Shown: positions 25,073 through 64,000 of the stretch, piece after piece
How the letters are laid out: each line of letters begins with the position of its first letter
Numbering within the stretch: the first letter of the stretch is position 1
Source of the DNA: Trichosphaerium sp. ATCC 40318
Taxonomy: Eukaryota; Protista; Tubulinea
Direction: 5' to 3'
Assembly: GCA_038496445.1 (NCBI GenBank)
Contig: JALMLS010000621.1
Location: forward strand, 1 to 64,000
DNA length: 64,000 nt
Program-made: the position numbers and the translations under genes
The notes under the pieces: generated by a model
Told to the model about the DNA's origin: nothing
Seen by the model: the letters and a program-made list of their open reading frames with translations, nothing else
The model's database searches: none

Positions 25073-26053
25073 AATATTTTTGTGCGATGTAAAACAATTT
25101 TTCTCTTTGAAACAAAAAAAAAAACTTGTAAATAAATATTAATTAAAGAACAACAATTATTAAAGTTTGCTCCCTTGTTCACTTGTAATTTCGTACAGAG
25201 AATGATCTCACTGACTATTTTCCTCAAAAAAAACTGCTGCATTTTAAAAAACACAAGAGCCTAAGCCTTATGAACAAGTTAAAGCCCAAGTTCTGTCAAT
25301 GGTATTTAGAATATCAAGTATGAACTGTGTTTGTAGGCCACTACGAACTTCGCCCTAGTAGAATCGACATGAGGACAAAAGATATAGCGTACCATTAACA
25401 CTAAGGATAAGACAGCCATTCATGAAAAAGCGTTAATGGCAGTGTTTTATTAATATTATCACGGTAAAACTAAAGTCCTTGAATTCACGTGTGAGATTTA
25501 AACGAAATTTAAAAAAAAACGTTCGTAAGTTGTGTTTAGGATTATAAAAATAGGTGGTACAATGACATTACACTATTGTTTTTATGTATACAGAGTATAG
25601 CGTGAAAAACAGACAAGAAGAGTAGAATTTTCGTACAACCTGCATACAACTTTTATCGTACACAATGTTGGTAGGTGAAAACTTTTTGGTACTTTTCTGT
25701 GCACGCTAGGCTCATCAAAAATTCGTGGTATTATTAAGAACGGTTTTCGGTTTGTTAAAACCAAAGGAAGCACTATAGTTGGCCGATTGATTGAAATAGA
25801 TGGTAGATCAGATATAGACAAGTTTTTTGTTTTTTGTGTTGGTTTTCTCTTAACAATTTTCATTGGACCTGGTCTCTGTCTTTGAGATATCTAATGTATA
25901 CCTGAATATGCTACCTCTAGTTTACTCTTAGTTTTACAATCGGATAAAAACTTTACCGAGACTATTTTGTATCAAAATCCAGTGCACAACACAAAAAAAA
26001 TATTGGTTCCTTAAACAAAAAACATTACACAATTGACCATAACTCTCAACAAG

Positions 26054-27211
26054 ATGACACGTACTGTAACTCTCGTCATCTGTATCGTTTCTTTCCTATC
26101 GATTATCTATGCCAACACCTACAACACTCTCGCCTCTGGATCGACACTGACTTGTCAAGGATGTAGAAAAGACATGCATTCTGGACGCTTTGTCTACTGC
26201 GATGGATACTACGCTGGATCGACTGTAACACACTGCGACTGGGTGGGTGGTGCAGGAGAATGCACCTTTCCAAGGGATACCTCTGTTACGAAAGCAGAGT
26301 GCCAACAAATGTGCGACAACGACTCTCGATGTGGATTCTATACTAGCTACTACAACTCTATCTGTAACTTATTCTTCATGACCTCCTGCAATCTCATTTC
26401 TGGCGGTGCCTCGGGAGATACCTTAGAAAAAGTTGTAGCAGCAACAACTGCACCCCCAACAGATGCCCCAACAACCCCACCTCCAACGGACCCACCTACG
26501 ACTGAAGCACCAACAGATCCACCAAGAACCTACAGCGCTCTCGCAACAGGATCAACACTCACATGTCAAGGATGCCGTAAAGATCTTCACGCTGGTCGAT
26601 TTGTTTACTGTACTGGGTACTACGCTGGCTCTACAATTACCACATGCGATTGGGTAGGTGGTCCTGGAGAGTGCACTTTCCCACGTGATACTTCCGTAAC
26701 ACACGCTGAATGCGAGCAAATGTGTACTGACGATCCAAGATGTAACTATTTTACTACGTACTATAACTCCATCTGTAATTTGTTCTACATGACAAACTGC
26801 AACCTCATCAGCGGAGGAGCTTCCGGTAATACATATTCTAAAGATCCTGTAACCGAACCACCAACGGTAGCACCAACAGAACCTCCTCAAACCTACACTT
26901 CTTTGGCGTCAAGCTCAACTCTCACTTGCCAAGGATGTCGCCGAGATATGCATGCTGGAAGATTTGTTTACTGTACTGGGTACTATGCTGGATCGACTGT
27001 AACCCATTGCGATTGGGTAGGAGGTCCTGGAGAGTGTTCGTTCCCAAGAGACACATCTGTGACTAAAGCTGAATGTGAACAACTTTGTACAAATGATGCG
27101 AGATGTAACTATTTTACAAGCTACTACAACTCTGTCTGTAACTTGTTCTACATGAATAGTTGTAACTTAATCTCTGGTGGCGCATCAGGTGATACTTACA
27201 GTAAAGATTAG
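26054..27211 (+). CDS. Secreted Cys-rich protein with three ~105-aa repeats (PAN/apple-like half) and PT linkers, intronless
   Basis: Signal peptide; 3x TLTCQGCR..GRFVYC.GYYAGS..CDWVGG.GEC.FPRDTSVT.AEC...C..D.RC..FT.YYNS.CNLF. Confidence 0.85.
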   Translation: MTRTVTLVICIVSFLSIIYANTYNTLASGSTLTCQGCRKDMHSGRFVYCDGYYAGSTVTHCDWVGGAGECTFPRDTSVTKAECQQMCDNDSRCGFYTSYYNSICNLFFMTSCNLISGGASGDTLEKVVAATTAPPTDAPTTPPPTDPPTTEAPTDPPRTYSALATGSTLTCQGCRKDLHAGRFVYCTGYYAGSTITTCDWVGGPGECTFPRDTSVTHAECEQMCTDDPRCNYFTTYYNSICNLFYMTNCNLISGGASGNTYSKDPVTEPPTVAPTEPPQTYTSLASSSTLTCQGCRRDMHAGRFVYCTGYYAGSTVTHCDWVGGPGECSFPRDTSVTKAECEQLCTNDARCNYFTSYYNSVCNLFYMNSCNLISGGASGDTYSKD

Positions 27212-28459
27212 AATTATCAATAAAGTTTCAACTCCCCTTCATAATGTCTAGTTTAACTTTTACGGTTTTTTTGTGTCACGTTCTTTTTTTTCAATCTATG
27301 CAAAGACAAAACTCGCTCTGTTTCTTAGGGAGTTATCCATACAGGGCGTGTAATGCCTATCAATTCATTTTTTTTGACTTAAAACCTAAAACCGAAGTAA
27401 TTGGTATGAGTGCGACCTGTAATTACTTGGATTGTTGTAATCATTGCGACACTTGCTAACGTATATGTTCACGTTGAAATTCGAGTATTTGTGTTTGATG
27501 CAAGATCGAAAAGTGGTTCAAATTTCTGATTGATTTGCAAAATGCAGCAATGAGAATAACAACGTTTTGAGTGTTTAACAGTACCCAGAGGATATGTGGA
27601 CTACTTTAGGTGTTACCACAATTTTTTTCCTATCAAGTATTTGGTATGATAAAAAGAAATACTTTGGTACTTTCTCTCGACAGCAGATTTGTCATCTGCG
27701 AGAAAACAAAACAAAAAAAACCCCAAGGAATTGACAATTCCAAACAAAACTCCCAAAAAAACCTGAGCAGTAGCTGGCTGAGGTGGACGCCTGTATGATT
27801 TCCCGTCCTTAAAAGGTTACAGCAATATAAAAAAAAGCAATGTACAATACATAAAGATTGTTGGCAGCTACCGGTTGAGTGCAAAAAAAGTAAGCCTCAA
27901 TGTGATAACAATAAGTACAAACAAAAACGCTTTTTTTGTTTTCCTTCGTTTTCATTACATCTTCAAGGCGTGAATAGTGGGTTCACCTAACTTCCCTGGT
28001 GCACGTAATTCAATATATTTATCAACATATTATAATGACACTTCAACGAGTAATGAAATTGAATGGCTCAAATGCGAAAACAATACAAGAAAAAAAAAAC
28101 TGAGAATGCAACGATGAATGGCAATGACTATGAACAAACAACAACTTACAATGTTATCAAAGGAATGATTCTTTTATTAAAGAGGCAAACTGTTACAGAA
28201 TAACCTGTCACGCACACACACAATACGATCAAGGAAACAGAAAACACCTAAAAAATAAAAAAAAGTAATCCAATAAAAAAATAAAAAAAATTATGTCTAG
28301 CCCTTTTGGTTCGTCCCACAATACCAAACCAACAAGGGTACCCTTTAAAAACATAAATATAGAGAGAAATGAGGGAAGACCTTTGGTTCATACCACAACC
28401 CAAAACCAAAGATCCCACCTACAATTAAAAAAAACTCTCTGAAAAAAAAACTCCTTTGC

Positions 28460-29548
28460 GTGGTGACCATGGAGTTGCGATAGCAATGCCCAGAGCTTAT
28501 GGGTCCGTGTTGGATGTGTTTGCCAATCCTTCGATAGACACTGTGGCGGTTGTAGCTGAGAGTACGTTATCTACGCTCACACAACTACACAGAGAAGGTT
28601 TAGTGCATAACAACATCACGCCGGATAACATCTTGGTGTTCCCTTCAATGGACATAATGCTCACTGATTTTGGCGCTTCTGGGTATGTAAAGGATACCAG
28701 AAAGCTCAAAACCTTTAAGGGCACTCCTGGTTATGTGTTGCCTTCTGTTGAGCGCAAAGGGTACACAACGCAGAATGACCTTTACGCAGTCGGTGTGACG
28801 ACAATGCGTATTGCATTAGGCGACGAATACGTGCCGTGCGATGAGTACTCTGGTGAAGGTGAGTTCGAGGCTAACCGCCTCTGCTTTCAAAAGTTGAAGG
28901 AAGTATTCCTGAAACGCTTTGAGCACTCGCTTCACCATGATGAGTGCTTGCTGGTCGATTTTGTTCAGGCTTGCTTGGAACCATCAGCCGAGTATCAGAG
29001 TGCGTCAGATTTGATGGAACATGAGTTCATCTCATTAGCGTATGACTGAAGGTCGGTGTAGAATCTCTTGGGGGATGTCATTGTTTTTGGCAAAGTGTCG
29101 ATTGAAGGATTGGCAAACACATCTAACACAGATCCATAAGCTCTAGGCATTGCTATCGCAACTCCATGGTCACCACTCAGGAACTTCAAGGGTTTGACGA
29201 CGCCTTTACACTTGAGACTGCTTGCGAAGTCATATTCGCGCTCCTAGAGAAGTTGAGTAAGTATTTGTGCCGGTTGGTGTAAAAATAAAAAAACCTAATA
29301 AAGGAAAAAGTGCTTACAAGTGCCTCAGCGTCCTCCTCATACTCATCTGTGCCTCTATTAGCCGTTTCGATAATTTTGAGAGCTACACTCTGTCCATTAT
29401 CATTTCGTCGCGCTTTTAACACACGACACCTCTCACTACTTCCCAATGGCTTTGCCGACATTATCGTCGCCCAACCTGTACCTTGTAAAGTACACTTTCT
29501 GTACGCAGTTCTAGCAAAGCGAGCGATCGTTCGGAATAAATTGGCCAT
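28460..29548. pseudogene. Rearranged Ser/Thr pseudokinase: 5' half on minus (29548-29094), 3' half inverted on plus (28460-29049)
   Basis: Same protein as 61621-62581; 83-bp inverted repeats at 28460-28542 and 29094-29176. Confidence 0.88.
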
Positions 29549-32500
29549 AGTCTTGTTACAGTAATGCACGAGGTAAGAAATCTGTTAAGTTGAACTAAGC
29601 GAAGCAAGTTGGCGGTAATTGTCCAACCGATAGTTTTCATAACTTTGATAAAAACATGCTTTTTTTACTGAATTAGGAAAACAAAGTGAATCGGCACCAC
29701 AAAGAAATGTGCCTCACAGAATTTAGGAAATGCATGCGAAATGGCACACCAAACAAATAAAGGCGTGGCACGTGAGGGAGCCCTCACAGAATTTTGCGTT
29801 TGAAGTCGTTAGTTGCATCTATGAATAAATCGTGCAATTTTTCGCATTCGCAGATGCTGTTGCAAGCGTTTATTTTACACTGTAATTTTAGTACGTGGCT
29901 ACGCTGTGGTAAGATGAAACTTGATAGTTCTACGTGAAGTTAATTTTTTGCAGTTTAGGGCACTCAGCGTGTAACCTGATACGTACCTCTACAATCTGTT
30001 GTTGATAAATGCATCTTGGAAGAATCACTGTATTTTTCCCTGGTGAGCTTGAGGTTTGCGCCAGCGTCTACCATGTGTCAGCAATAGTGATAGAGTGTTG
30101 GTTCTTTTTTGGTTTTTGGTTTGGATTGAGAACATTACATATGCTTTTACTATCATGCCTGTTTGGTTTAGAAGGTAGATATCAAGATTTGTTTTGTTTG
30201 AGCGAAATTGTTTAAAACTGTCTCAAAGCAACTTGGAGAAGCTAACCAGTACCATTAATACTATCTGGGCTCGTCAAAGCTGCTTATTACAATCCTTATA
30301 TCTTCAACTAATCTTTACAAAGAACAAATAACGGCTAAACACAGCCAGCTTTAGCGTCTGATAATGCGTTGGTGTCGTGGCTTGTGGCAAGTAGTGGAAT
30401 TGTAGATTACCAACAAACCAGCAGTTGGAGGTGCGGTGGTTACCACTGGCGCGAATGTCATGTTATTCTGTTGGTTAAAGATACGTTGTAAGACTGTCAA
30501 ACAGTTTCTAATATAAGATTATTTAAGAGCGTATTGGTACCCTTGGTAGTCATAGTTTGCTTGTTAGTTTCACCACGATATCACGTTTTTGATCCACAAT
30601 TGCTTTGTTGGAGCAGAACCAGCTAAAAGCTTCAAAACGTCATGAATCCAACCAGCAACGCATAGCACCACAACAATTTGAGAGTCAGGTTTTTGAAGTT
30701 CTGGACTAAAATAGCTGCCAAGCAGGTATAAATTGGCGTCCATCTCTCATAGTACATAAACGCTTGTCCCGAGAGCAAAGTAAAAGCACTCGTTACACCG
30801 GCACGATCACGTTTTTTGAAACCAAAAAGGCAGGAAACCGGTTAAAAGCGTCACCAACGCTAAAAATAGTTTACCGTATAAAATCAAGGCATTTAATGAG
30901 AAATATGCGCTTTAAGGAAGCAAGAACAGAAAGATCAAGCTTTTTTGGATCAAAACAATACGGAAACAACTTACTTAACATTAAAAACGTAACTCAAGTT
31001 ACTACAGGTTAATTACGCAATTCTAGTTTTGAGGGATTCCTACTAGTTTGTAATGACTTAATACCCATTGTATTATAGAAAAGGCACATAATACGCCTGG
31101 GAGATACCATACAGAAGAGCCTAAAGAACTGATACATACTCAACTCACCTGCGAGCCAACTATTGATGTTCTCCATTGCACCCAACCACTTCTAGAAAAA
31201 ATGCCATGTATTAATTATCCGACAACACTTGGGGTAGAGGCGAGGAGGGTAAATAACTGTAAATAAAATAACATAAAAAAATAAAAAAATGTTTAGCAAA
31301 AATCTTTCTCTAAAGTTGCACTTGCTTTGAGGCAGTTTGAGATTGAGATATCTACTGAGGCTGAACCAACTTGTCGACTAATTGTCTTGTTCGTAATACT
31401 TAGTAGAGACACGTGGATTCTACTGTATTTATTTCGAAGCCTCGATTGATAAACAGGCGCTATCTACTGTACTTTCCTTATCAAAGGTAGTTTATCAAAA
31501 AGTAACTTGCCACAAATTGTTAAACTTGACATAACTCCATGCTCACCTCACGCATTACTAACCAGCGAATGAGCAATGTGATACATATGTTATAAACAGT
31601 ACAAACTTGTTTACAAAGAACCAGCAATAGTGTGGTACTACAGAATCCTGTCGTAAACAGTTCGATGTCGTGAGTACTGGCTGGGTATGTATCTAAGACA
31701 AATTGACGCCATGGGCGAGGGGATATTTTGATTGCTACTCGCCATTGCCTTGTGTCTATTGTGTCATTCGATATTGACTGTCGTGTTCAGGCCAATCAAT
31801 TGCTTGAAATGTTCCATATCTTCATTCAAATCAGACAATGCAAAACAAATAGTTAAGTGACCTCTTTTTGCTTAATCCTGTTAGTTCGTCTTTACAAGCA
31901 AGGCATTCTAAGGGGTTTTTGCAACGTTAGGTGCATTGTGATGAGGCGAAATTTCATCTCAACAGTATTGTATATTTTAACCCAAACAACTTAATGACTT
32001 ATGAAGCAATCTGCGCGTGTCATTTCTAAGCGTTAAGTTTTTATTTCAGTCCGAAGAATTATGTAGTCATTTTGCCCATAAATGAGGACAAACAAAAGCC
32101 AAGACAACTGTGTATAGCGACACTTTTTCCGACTTTTCATGATTATTTTCGTTCTTCTTTCCTAAACGTTTCTTAATTGTCCAAATATAGTCAATGGAAA
32201 AAACAATCCTCCGTGACAGAAATTTTTTGCAGTACTTGAATTACAAGTACTGCACAGAGTGACAAAAAAGGGTTCTTGAAGGTACTTTTCAAAATACCTT
32301 CACGTCCTCTCGAATGACTCGTTTTCTTTACAAACAGTGCTGCTAGGCTATAAACGTCAAGGAAATCCAAAAAACACCAATAAAAAACTTCAAGACTGCA
32401 AACTTCAGGCACATCCGTCAAAACCTGCCAAAAAAAAAGGAAAGAAAAGAAAAAACTTCATGAAAAGAAAGAGCAGTTTTAACGAACAGTAGGCAGTTAT

Positions 32501-60787: not shown

Positions 60788-61620
60788 GTTGTACACCAAA
60801 AACAAAACCAAACGTTTTTTTATTCCACAAAAAAGTCCTCACATGGCTTTTTTGTTTGAAGGTTGTTTTTATCAACCATCTTCTATTGTACAATCTTAAA
60901 TAAAAAACATTTTTCCAAAAAAGTCACAGGAGTTCAACGAGGCTCAAGTTCTTGGGACAGTTTAAACAATCTCGCTCAAACAAAACAAATCTTGATAGCT
61001 ACCCTTATGATGCTAAAACAGGCACGATAGCAAAGGCATATGTAATGCTCTTTAAAACCAAAAAAAAAACCAACTATCACTATTGCTGACACATGGTGGA
61101 CGCTGGCGCAAACCTCAAGCTCACCAAGTAAAAATACGGTGATTCCTCCATCCAACCGGTCTACAATACAAACAGATGTTCAGGTACGGTACGTTGCAGG
61201 TAAACGCTGAGCACCTAAACTGCAAAGAATAAACTTCACGTAGAACTAGTTTCATTTGCTTCGCGCGTAGCCACGTACTAAAATTACAGTGTAAAATAAA
61301 CGCTTGCAACAGCATCTGCGAACGCGAACAATTGCACGATTTATTCATAGATGCAACTACCGACTTCAAACGCAAAATTCTGTGAGGGCTCCCTCACGTG
61401 CCACGCCTTTATTTGTTTGGTGTGCCATTTCGCGTGCATTTCCTAAATTCTCTGAGGCGCATTTCTTTGTGGTGCCGATTCACTTTGTTTTCCTAATTCA
61501 GTAAAAAAAGCATGTTTTTATCAAAGTTATGAAAACTATCGGTTGGACGATTACCGCCAACTTGCTTCACTTAGTTCAACTTAACAGATTTCTTACCTCG
61601 TGCATTACTGTAACAAGACT

Positions 61621-62581
61621 ATGGCCAATTTATTTCGTACAATCGCTCGCTTTGCTAGAACTGCGTACAGAAAGTGTACTTTACAAGGTACGGGTTGGGC
61701 GACGATAATGTCGGCAAAGCCATTGGGAAGTAGTGAGAGGTGTCGTGTGTTAAAAGCGCGACGAAATGATAATGGACAGAGTGTAGCTCTCAAAATTATC
61801 GAAACGGCTAATAGAAGCACAGATGAGTATGAGGAGGACGCTGAGGCACTTGTAAGCACTTTTTCCTTTTATTAGGTTTTTATTTTTACACCAACCGGCA
61901 CAAATACTTACTCGACTTCTCTAGGAGCGCGAATATGACTTCGCAAGCAGTCTCAAGTGTAAAGGCGTTGTCAAACCCTTGAAGTTTCTGAGTGGTGACC
62001 ATGGAGTTGCGATAGCAATGCCTAGAGCTTATGGATCTGTGTTGGATGTGTTTGCCAATCCTTCAATCGACACTGTGGCGGTTGTAGCTGAGAGTACGTT
62101 ATCTACGCTCACACAACTACACAGAGAAGGTGTAGTGCATAACAACATCACGCCAGATAACATCTTGGTGTTCCCTTCAATGGACATAATGCTCACTGAT
62201 TTTGGCGCTTCTGGGTATGTAAAGGATACCAGAAAGCTCAAAACCTTTAAGGGCACTCCTGGTTATGTGTTGCCGTCTGTTGAGCGCAAAGGGTACACAA
62301 CGCAGAATGACCTTTACGCAGTCGGTGTGACGACAATGCGTATCGCATTAGGCGACGAATACGTGCCTTGCGATGAGTACTCTGGTGAAGGTGAGTTCGA
62401 GGTTAACCGCCTCTGCTTTCAAAAGTTGAAGGAAGTATTCCTGAAACGCTTTGAGCACTCGCTTCACCATGATGAGTGCTTGCTAGTCGATTTTGTTCAG
62501 GCTTGCCTGGAACCATCAACCGAGTATCAGAGTGCGTCGGATTTGATGGAACATGATTTCATCTCATTAGCGTATGACTGA
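61621..62581 (+). CDS. Ser/Thr protein-kinase-fold protein, probable pseudokinase; intron 61852-61924
   Basis: VALK, alphaC EREY, HNNITPDNIL, DFG, GTPGY, DLYAVG. Confidence 0.88.
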
Positions 62582-63764
62582 AGGTCGGTGTAGAATCTCT
62601 TGGGATGCCATTGTTTTTGGCAAAGGAGTTTTTTTTTCAGAGAGTTTTTTTAAATTGTAGGTGGGATCTTTGGTTTTGGGTTGTGGTATGAACCAAAGAT
62701 CTTCTCTCATTTCTCTCTATATTTATGTTTTTAAAGGGTACCCTTGTTGGTTTGGTATTGTGGGACGAACCAAAAGGGCTAGACCTAATTTTTTTTTTAT
62801 TTTTTATTGGATTACTTTTTTTATTTTTTAGGTGTTTTCTGTTTCCTTGATCGTATTGTGTGTGTGCGTGACAGGTTATTCTGTAACAGTTTGCCTCTTT
62901 AATAAAATAATTATTCGTTTGATAACATTGGAAGTTGTTGTTTGTTCATAGTCATTGCCATTCATCGTTGCATTCTCAGTTTTTTTTCTTGTCTTGTTTT
63001 CACAATTGAGCCATTCTATTTCAAAACTCATTGAAGTGTCATTATAAAACGTTGATAAATATATTGCATGCATATGAGACGATGCAAGAGAAGCGTAGAA
63101 TATCGCAGCTTTGAAAACAAATAAAAAAAGCATTATTGTTTGTACTTATTGTTACCTTGAGGCTTATTTTTTTGCACTCAACTGGTAGCTGCCAACAATC
63201 TTTATGTATTGTACATTGCTTTTTTTAATATTGCTGTAACCTTTTAAGGACGGGAAATCATACAGGCGTCCACCTCAGCCAGCTACTGCCGAGGTTTTGG
63301 GAGTTTTTGTTGGAATTGTCAATTCCTTTTTTTTTTTGTTTTGTTTTTCTCGCAGATGACAAATCTGCTGTCGAGAGAAAGTACCAAAGTATTTCTTTTT
63401 ATCATACCAAATACTTGATAGGAAAAAAATTGTGGTAACACCTAAAGTAGTCCACATATCCTCTGGGCACTGCTAAACACTCAAAACGTTGTTTTTCTCA
63501 TTGTTGCGTTTTGCAAATCAATCAGAAATTTGAACCACTTTTCGATCTTGCATCAAACACAAATACTCGAATTTCGATATAGACGTTTACTTTAGTACCC
63601 TTTTGGTTTATGTAACTGTACAAACGGCACTACAAGGATGCAAAAACCACAACGCCAAAAGCAAAGCGATTTGCAAGTGCTGCAAAAAACAATACCAAGT
63701 GCGTGCTCGGATAATTGCTTCAGCTTAGGTAGTAGTCAAAAAAAATGATAAGCGTTACACGCCT

Positions 63765-63970
63765 GTCAGAAGTATCTTGCAAAAGTACATTGTCCCATAA
63801 CATCCAGTCGCAGTGGGTTACAGCGTATCCATCGCAGTAGACTAAGCGTACAGAATGCATGTCTTTCTACATCCTTGACAAGTCAGTGTCGATCCAGAGG
63901 TTGTAGTGTTGGCACAAATAATCGATAGGCATGAAACAACACAGATGAGGGTTACAGAAGTACGTGTCAT
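63765..63970 (-). pseudogene. Truncated, frameshifted paralog of the Cys-rich secreted gene at 26054
   Basis: ATGACACGTACT..TCTGGATCGACACTGACTTGTCAAGGATGTAGAAAGACATGC, with indels; then jumps to sequence matching ~27340. Confidence 0.85.
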
Positions 63971-64000
63971 CTTGTTTTAGGGTTATCGTCAATTGTCATG

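Follow-up and report, generated by a model that had tools for sequence, protein, structure and literature searches.

The locus of interest, a broken member of a kinase-like gene family, lies at 28.4–29.2 kb of a 64,000-nucleotide stretch of the Trichosphaerium sp. ATCC 40318 genome (GenBank assembly GCA_038496445.1, contig JALMLS010000621.1, positions 1–64,000, forward strand). This whole stretch, hereafter the window, is C129:1–64000 of a 70.3-Mb, 642-contig assembly (~38% GC; short GT..AG introns). At the locus, the 3' part of a two-exon gene stands in the opposite orientation to the 5' part, and an 83-bp piece of its coding sequence (R) is present twice, in inverted orientation. We conclude that this arrangement is probably the product of a one-off, balanced micro-inversion that took place in the cell and left duplications at both breakpoints, rather than a genetic switch.

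The split locus is derived from an intact gene

Paralogues of the split gene were identified by DNA search and by six-frame protein search of the organism's own genome, the protein searches being run exon by exon. At least seven gene copies are present in the amoeba genome. All six full copies other than the split one are intact and contain a single R, and every intact copy has the order 5' part–R–3' part–downstream flank. A search of the genome with R returned exactly one R per close copy, and an antisense R downstream of the gene in none of them.

The segment that has changed orientation was delimited by BLAST of window positions 23–34 kb against three paralogous loci: one at 61 kb in the window (hereafter the 61k copy), one at C129:143k (the 143k copy) and one at C11:150k. 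In these comparisons only 28457–29095 is reversed, and both flanks are collinear. The 61k copy (61621–62581), which has one R (61992–62074) and no antisense R, served as a proxy for the ancestral arrangement. Against it, 27476–28459 corresponds to 63575–62620 (inverted), 28457–29095 to 61989–62625 (direct), and 29091–30226 to 62077–60952 (inverted). Because the intact paralogues all lack a second R, and only 28457–29095 is flipped relative to them, the arrangement at 28.4–29.2 kb is, by this comparison, derived: a piece of 636–639 bp has been flipped in place.

The repeat arms and the two junctions

An inverted-repeat search placed the arms of R at 28457–28545 and 29091–29179 (89 nt, 91% complementary), with a clean core of 83 nt that contains six mismatches (D' and D in Table 1). 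Chance is excluded by the arm-to-arm BLAST match, whose E-value is 9e-30 for the window and 5.5e-28 for the 70-Mb genome. All six differences between the arms are synonymous in the common reading frame (CCT/CCC, GGA/GGG, TCT/TCC, TTA/TTG, TCA/TCG and ATC/ATA). A second, much shorter inverted pair consists of CTTTGC at 28454–28459 and its reverse complement, GCAAAG, at 29090–29095; the last two bases of the latter overlap the first two of the right R arm. The two 6-mers are identical, and the R arms are 93% identical. The first-pass annotation of this stretch, made from the letters alone, had described the layout as flank, R (+), 3' half (+), R (−), 5' half (−); that layout, its arms, coordinates and six synonymous mismatches were all reproduced. 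The GCAAAG duplication that it reported is likewise present at both positions, as an inverted rather than a direct pair.

With the flank labelled A, the 6-mer B, the 3' part of the gene C, R itself D and the 5' part E, the ancestral A-B-C-D-E is rearranged at the locus to A-B-D'-C'-B'-D-E, where B is 6 bp and D 83 bp long. Two junctions define the change. At J1, the gene-side break (28459|28460), the flank is ancestral up to CTTTGC and is followed by the first base of R. At J2, the UTR-side break (29095|29096), the ancestral 3' untranslated region (UTR) runs to GCAAAG and is followed by the last base of R read backwards. Two nucleotides at J2 (AG, 29094–29095) can be assigned to either side and constitute a 2-nt microhomology; J1 has none. 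R is plain gene sequence and the 6-mer plain UTR sequence, and neither has extra copies at the paralogous loci.

The product of a staggered-break inversion was modelled from the 61k copy and aligned with window positions 28283–29700. A single 1421-nt match was obtained (97.3%, 7 gap positions), which runs through both junctions; nothing has been lost, that is, the rearrangement is balanced. Two other origins were considered for the layout. Two independently truncated, convergent genes are ruled out: the common boundaries and the collinear flanks mark a single event. Transposon-mediated inversion is unsupported, no element ends having been found at the junctions.

Both edges of the 83-bp R lie directly 5' of GTGG in the gene's orientation (..TGA|GTGGTG.. 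and ..ACT|GTGGCG.., at 28460–28463 and 28543–28546). This could be a coincidence or could reflect a nicking-site preference.

The two parts of the gene and their products

The plus-strand open reading frame (ORF) at 28462–29049 encodes the C-terminal part of a Pkinase domain (PF00069, E 2.1e-19, 70.4 bits, profile positions 99–262), and has no gene start or promoter of its own. The 5' part, on the minus strand, retains its upstream region, exon 1 and intron intact. Past R, its frame enters the reverse complement of the 3' UTR and reaches a stop at 28995–28997; the predicted product of this stump is truncated, with 127 native and 32 unrelated residues (159 aa). The first-pass annotation had proposed that a flip between the two R arms would restore a complete gene, and this is borne out: the flip yields an open gene of 295 codons, followed by an antisense R. 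As it stands, the gene is divided between a 5' stump that keeps the promoter and a 3' piece that lacks one, and the locus is a null allele or pseudogene in a family with three near-identical intact copies.

The family itself is kinase-like in sequence (295 aa, two exons). Exon 2 of an intact copy matches PF00069 with 77.1 bits (Pfam cut-off 31.7), and among solved structures, PAK and MST kinases of the STE20 group come closest (E about 1e-14). All close copies have H-N-N-(I/V)-T-P-D-N in place of HRDxKxxN, and so lack the catalytic aspartate and lysine; the DFG motif and the VALK lysine are retained. Judged from these motifs, the family probably consists of lineage-specific, STE20-like pseudokinases that are catalytically dead. 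No close relative was found among 1.84 billion representative proteins, where only generic kinase-domain matches were obtained, none listed above 40% identity, and a word-based search for homologous proteins with exon 2 gave no match.

Beyond the full copies listed in Table 1, the searches found relatives that are more distant, at about 30%, and one copy on C443 that is reduced to its 3' end. The C443 fragment (C443:7159–7522) is a second broken member, of which the last ~210 nt and the downstream flank remain (93–94% identity). It keeps the ancestral order and is joined to unrelated sequence.

Table 1. Parts of the split kinase-family locus, and its full-length paralogues. Positions are those of the window unless a contig is named.
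Feature	Position	Strand	Description
A, ancestral downstream flank	27476–28453	.	Inverted-collinear with 63575–62626; 91% over 989 nt; collinear also with C129:142.5 kb and C11
B, CTTTGC	28454–28459	+	Last ancestral flank-side bases; copy 1 of the 6-bp (4–6 bp) breakpoint duplication; J1 = 28459|28460
Flipped segment D'-C'-B'	28460–29095	+	R, rest of exon 2, stop codon, 46 nt of 3' UTR; opposite orientation to rest of gene
D', left arm of R	28460–28542	+	Exon 2 codons 23–50; 143k-type alleles C,G,C,G and private ATA
3' gene fragment	28462–29049	+	195 open codons and TGA; C-terminal two thirds of kinase domain (HNN..., DFG, to end)
B', GCAAAG	29090–29095	+	Copy 2 of the 6-bp duplication, end of flipped 3' UTR; J2 = 29095|29096
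D, right arm of R	29094–29176	−	Still attached to the gene's 5' part; 61k-type alleles T,A,T,A and private TTA
Exon 2, first 50 codons	29094–29243	−	Frame continuous through R
Intron	29244–29317	−	74 nt, GT..AG (GTAAGC...TCTCTAG); position conserved across all paralogues
Exon 1	29318–29548	−	77 codons, ATG at 29548–29546; glycine-loop region, VALK lysine
E, upstream region	29549–30226	−	Collinear with the intact copy's upstream (62077–60952); conserved among paralogues
Intact sister copy (61k)	61621–62581	+	Exon 1 61621–61851, exon 2 61925–62581, 295 codons; 97% DNA identity
Intact copy (143k)	C129:~142.9–143.9 kb		97% DNA identity; 142862–143515 also listed
Intact copy (C11)	C11:~150.3–151.4 kb		93% DNA identity; 150780–151433 also listed
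Two intact C12 copies	C12:589712–590362, 620262–620912		63% protein identity
One copy on C133			50% protein identity

Origin of the synonymous differences between the arms

In an alignment of all copies, four of the six differing sites sort the arms by paralogue: the right arm shares T, A, T and A with the 61k copy, and the left arm shares C, G, C and G with the 143k copy. Each of the other two differences is confined to one arm, the right arm alone having TTA and the left arm alone ATA. Over its 83 positions, the left arm is identical to the 143k copy (C129:143366–143448) at 82, to the 61k copy at 78 and to the right arm at 77. The first-pass annotation had raised the possibility of a paralogue with the left-arm alleles. 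The 143k copy carries them, with a match that is close rather than exact.

The synonymous bias can be read against variation in the family as a whole. Within the family, synonymous and nonsynonymous differences stand at 19:5, 23:5 and 22:4 (~82% synonymous), and the chance of six out of six being synonymous among paralogue differences is ~0.3. Neutral, in-place decay of once-identical arms was rejected: ~72% of random changes are nonsynonymous, giving p ~5e-4 for six synonymous changes out of six, and four of the sites carry paralogue alleles. On this evidence from the alignment, the arm differences are imported from, or arose within, functional genes, and the apparent recoding is paralogue variation; the variants are synonymous because they derive from functional genes. 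The earlier idea that both arms have been shaped by coding selection is not needed, given that four of the six sites match functional paralogues and that most differences in the family are synonymous anyway. More generally, where the arms of a repeat in a multigene family differ only at synonymous sites, the cause may be exchange between paralogues and need not be selection on the repeats.

Outside R, informative sites alternate between 61k-like and 143k-like states, which indicates a near-star relationship among the copies. The flipped piece has 16–17 coding differences from each of the 61k and 143k copies. With these differences and the alternating informative sites, it is ruled out that the flipped piece was copied from an assembled paralogue.

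Two routes could have made the arms unlike. One arm may later have gained a short tract (about 45–60 bp) from an intact paralogue by gene conversion; alternatively, the flipped piece may have come from another chromatid or allele. In addition, each arm would have gained one private point change. We infer that the non-identity of the arms reflects either a conversion tract or a donor on another molecule; on the alignment, either arm could be the one that was changed.

A proposed course of events

The locus would have begun as a normal two-exon gene, in which one balanced micro-inversion reversed the last 195 codons and the 3' UTR (636–639 bp). Two pairs of staggered breaks, followed by fill-in of the single-stranded ends and by end joining with the middle piece reversed, would give A-B-D'-C'-B'-D-E. 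The same layout could have been produced by a replicative template switch with two jumps: a strand copied to the end of R would jump to the other strand 550 nt ahead, copy back to the start of R, and jump forward again. Staggered breakage with rejoining and template switching cannot be separated from the sequence. Among the three hypotheses offered by the first-pass annotation, the one-off event in which paralogue sequence is involved is the nearest to the evidence.

Several observations weigh against an inversion in the cell. The arms should have been identical at birth, yet they differ by 7%, and an extra event must be assumed. Both gene fragments are still open, with few lineage-specific changes: 3 synonymous and 2 nonsynonymous derived changes at the split locus, compared with 5:1 and 7:0 in intact copies. 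These 3 + 2 changes are too few to date the break, and dating by dN/dS (the ratio of nonsynonymous to synonymous substitution rates) failed. Lastly, the DNA of the published Trichosphaerium assembly was amplified by multiple displacement amplification (MDA; PMC10521059), a procedure that yields inverted chimeras.

Alternative explanations

The last of these points leads to an explanation outside the cell, in which the nascent strand of phi29 polymerase switched template twice within the locus during MDA, the chimera became the backbone of the contig, and the real gene is intact. For the Trichosphaerium sp. assembly, nuclei were amplified with REPLI-g, and reads from Nanopore and PacBio sequencing were processed with Canu and Pilon (PMC10521059). 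More than 85% of MDA chimeras are inverted, most with 2–21 nt of complementarity at the junction (PMC1855051), a range that includes the 2-nt microhomology at J2; and when MDA DNA is assembled from long reads, local misassemblies number in the hundreds (bioRxiv 10.64898/2026.06.11.730069). Nevertheless, templating from one locus, together with Illumina polishing, predicts identical arms, whereas 6 of 83 positions differ and four of these carry real paralogue alleles; nor can another assembled paralogue have been the template, given the 16–17 coding differences from each. MDA chimeras also typically have an intervening deletion, while the locus is balanced, its sequence resuming within 6 bp of the point at which it departed. 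Finally, the locus lies deep inside a 176-kb contig and not at a contig end. We therefore regard an amplification artefact as unlikely. Mis-joining of paralogues by the assembler is ruled out, since J1 and J2 are both non-homologous. The non-identical arms make the locus a good test case for telling real micro-inversions from MDA chimeras in an amplified assembly.

The remaining explanations accept the structure as real and give it a function. If the intact upstream region, exon 1 and intron still drive transcription, a promoter-driven RNA would contain R, then the 3' half and a second R in antisense, form an 83-bp stem, and direct RNA interference (RNAi) against the sister copies. The minus strand of 28440–29200 does fold with the arms as one long stem (minimum free energy −305 kcal/mol, z −12.9), and the genome has Piwi-domain genes and several RNA-dependent RNA polymerase (RdRP) genes. 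Against a hairpin-RNA source stand the restriction of the structure to the split copy, where a mutational scar explains it fully, the four of six stem mismatches that are non-wobble on the minus strand, and the lack of any sign of selection for the hairpin; we consider it very unlikely that this is what the locus is. Small interfering RNAs (siRNAs) are a possible by-product if the stump is transcribed, the modelled transcript comprising R, 550 nt of antisense and the antisense R. A combined account, in which an unusually active micro-inversion process within the nucleus made the locus, and the stump's hairpin and 550 nt of antisense feed RNAi against the three intact sisters, appears distinctly unlikely. 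Under it, the locus is not a fresh test-tube product, because the arms have diverged or been converted; if true, the locus would represent an early stage of small-RNA gene birth. The first-pass annotation had also suggested a phase-variation-like switch, and a reversible ON/OFF switch or a ciliate-style scrambled gene, with recombination between the R arms restoring the gene in some nuclei or life stages, would suit a multinucleate organism with a complex life cycle (PMC10521059). The geometry permits it: a flip gives the 295-codon gene, and both fragments are still open. Such a switch finds no support in the family, in which the repeats are absent from all paralogues and each of the other six full copies is whole, with one R. 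Arms of 83 bp and 93% identity are poor substrates for homologous recombination, and the second duplication, of 6 bp, is explained by break repair as part of a standard inversion scar and is unneeded for a switch. No recombinase family was matched in a Pfam scan of long unspliced ORFs within ~6 kb, a scan that could miss a many-exon gene. A switch is thus extremely unlikely, and a one-off micro-inversion remains the explanation that we favor.

Sequences flanking the split and intact copies

Just downstream of the gene is a stretch of ~170 bp (28290–28456; 62623–62790; C129:142655–142822; and copies on C11 and C12) that is ~83% conserved even in the C12 copies, compared with only 72–77% identity in the coding DNA of the latter. 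This stretch holds a conserved hairpin (CTTTGGTT...AACCAAAG) that lacks covariation support, and an Rfam scan of 27300–30400 matched nothing. The ~170-bp stretch may be a 3' end or a regulatory element. The outer break of the inversion falls exactly at its edge.

Upstream of the gene (29600–29790 and 61400–61600), long identical blocks occur in all copies, including the 75%-identical C12 pair. These blocks comprise an inverted repeat containing CACGTG and a T-rich block, and the region looks like a shared promoter.

The two kinase loci in the window are part of an inverted segmental duplication of at least 2.75 kb, and probably more than 4 kb, because a paralogue of the ORF that neighbours the split locus adjoins the intact 61k copy. 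This neighbouring ORF (26033–27211) is Pro/Thr-rich, has PAN-domain matches and contains three internal DNA repeats of about 363–411 bp; its 78% match lies at 63767–63996. Three copies of a ~490-bp repeat are present, at 27456–27943, 37914–38401 and about 63110–63575, and the first two are 94.5% identical. Each kinase locus has one copy in its flank, and the other copy lies at 38 kb. The repeat could represent a small mobile element, or it could belong to the segmental duplication.

Comparison with known systems

The closest parallel to the locus is found in Drosophila, where inverted duplications of non-repetitive sequence accompany 17 of 29 inversions and are explained by a staggered-break model (Ranz et al. 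2007, PLoS Biol 5:e152, PMC1885836). In a chromatid variant of that model, the two copies of each duplication come from different DNA molecules (PMC1885836). The Trichosphaerium locus shares with these inversions (i) an inverted segment bounded on either side by an inverted duplicate of single-copy sequence, in the order A-B-D'-C'-B'-D-E, (ii) the absence of a transposon or pre-existing repeat at the breakpoints, and (iii) a breakpoint that splits a gene. It differs in its scale (0.64 kb within one gene, as opposed to kilobases to megabases), in its amoebozoan host, and in that its duplicate copies are not merely decaying, one of them having probably taken up paralogue alleles.

Replicative template switching of the fork stalling and template switching (FoSTeS) or microhomology-mediated break-induced replication (MMBIR) type is captured by a four-point short template-switch model. 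Two jumps in such a model give exactly the product seen at the locus, with junction microhomologies of 0 and 2 nt, and with template switching it is easier for the flipped piece to derive from a second molecule, a source that would account for the difference between the arms.

Hairpin RNA loci that arise from pseudogenes or inverted duplications are known as sources of endogenous siRNAs in mouse oocytes, and in plants microRNAs can be born by inverted duplication of a target gene. The split locus resembles these in having an inverted coding duplicate within one potential transcription unit, next to presumably expressed paralogues; it differs in that its stem is only 83 bp.

With the bacterial Hin, Gin and Fim switches, the locus has in common that inverted repeats bound an invertible-looking segment whose orientation decides whether a gene is whole. 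Unlike them, it has a eukaryotic host, no recombinase in the ~6-kb scan of long ORFs, and a structure found in no relative; moreover, its repeats are coding sequence that the event itself duplicated.

The inverted chimeras of MDA (Lasken and Stockwell 2007, PMC1855051) share with the locus an inverted junction within a few hundred bases, short complementarity and a likely MDA-amplified source. The locus is distinguished from them by the lack of an intervening deletion, by two reciprocal junctions that restore the register, and by its non-identical arms.

Taken alone, the locus is an ordinary null mutation in a redundant family, and adds one more case to a known kind of mutation. Set beside the systems above, it is a clean, base-resolved signature of a staggered break or template switch, at sub-kilobase scale, in Amoebozoa, a group in which structural mutation has hardly been described.

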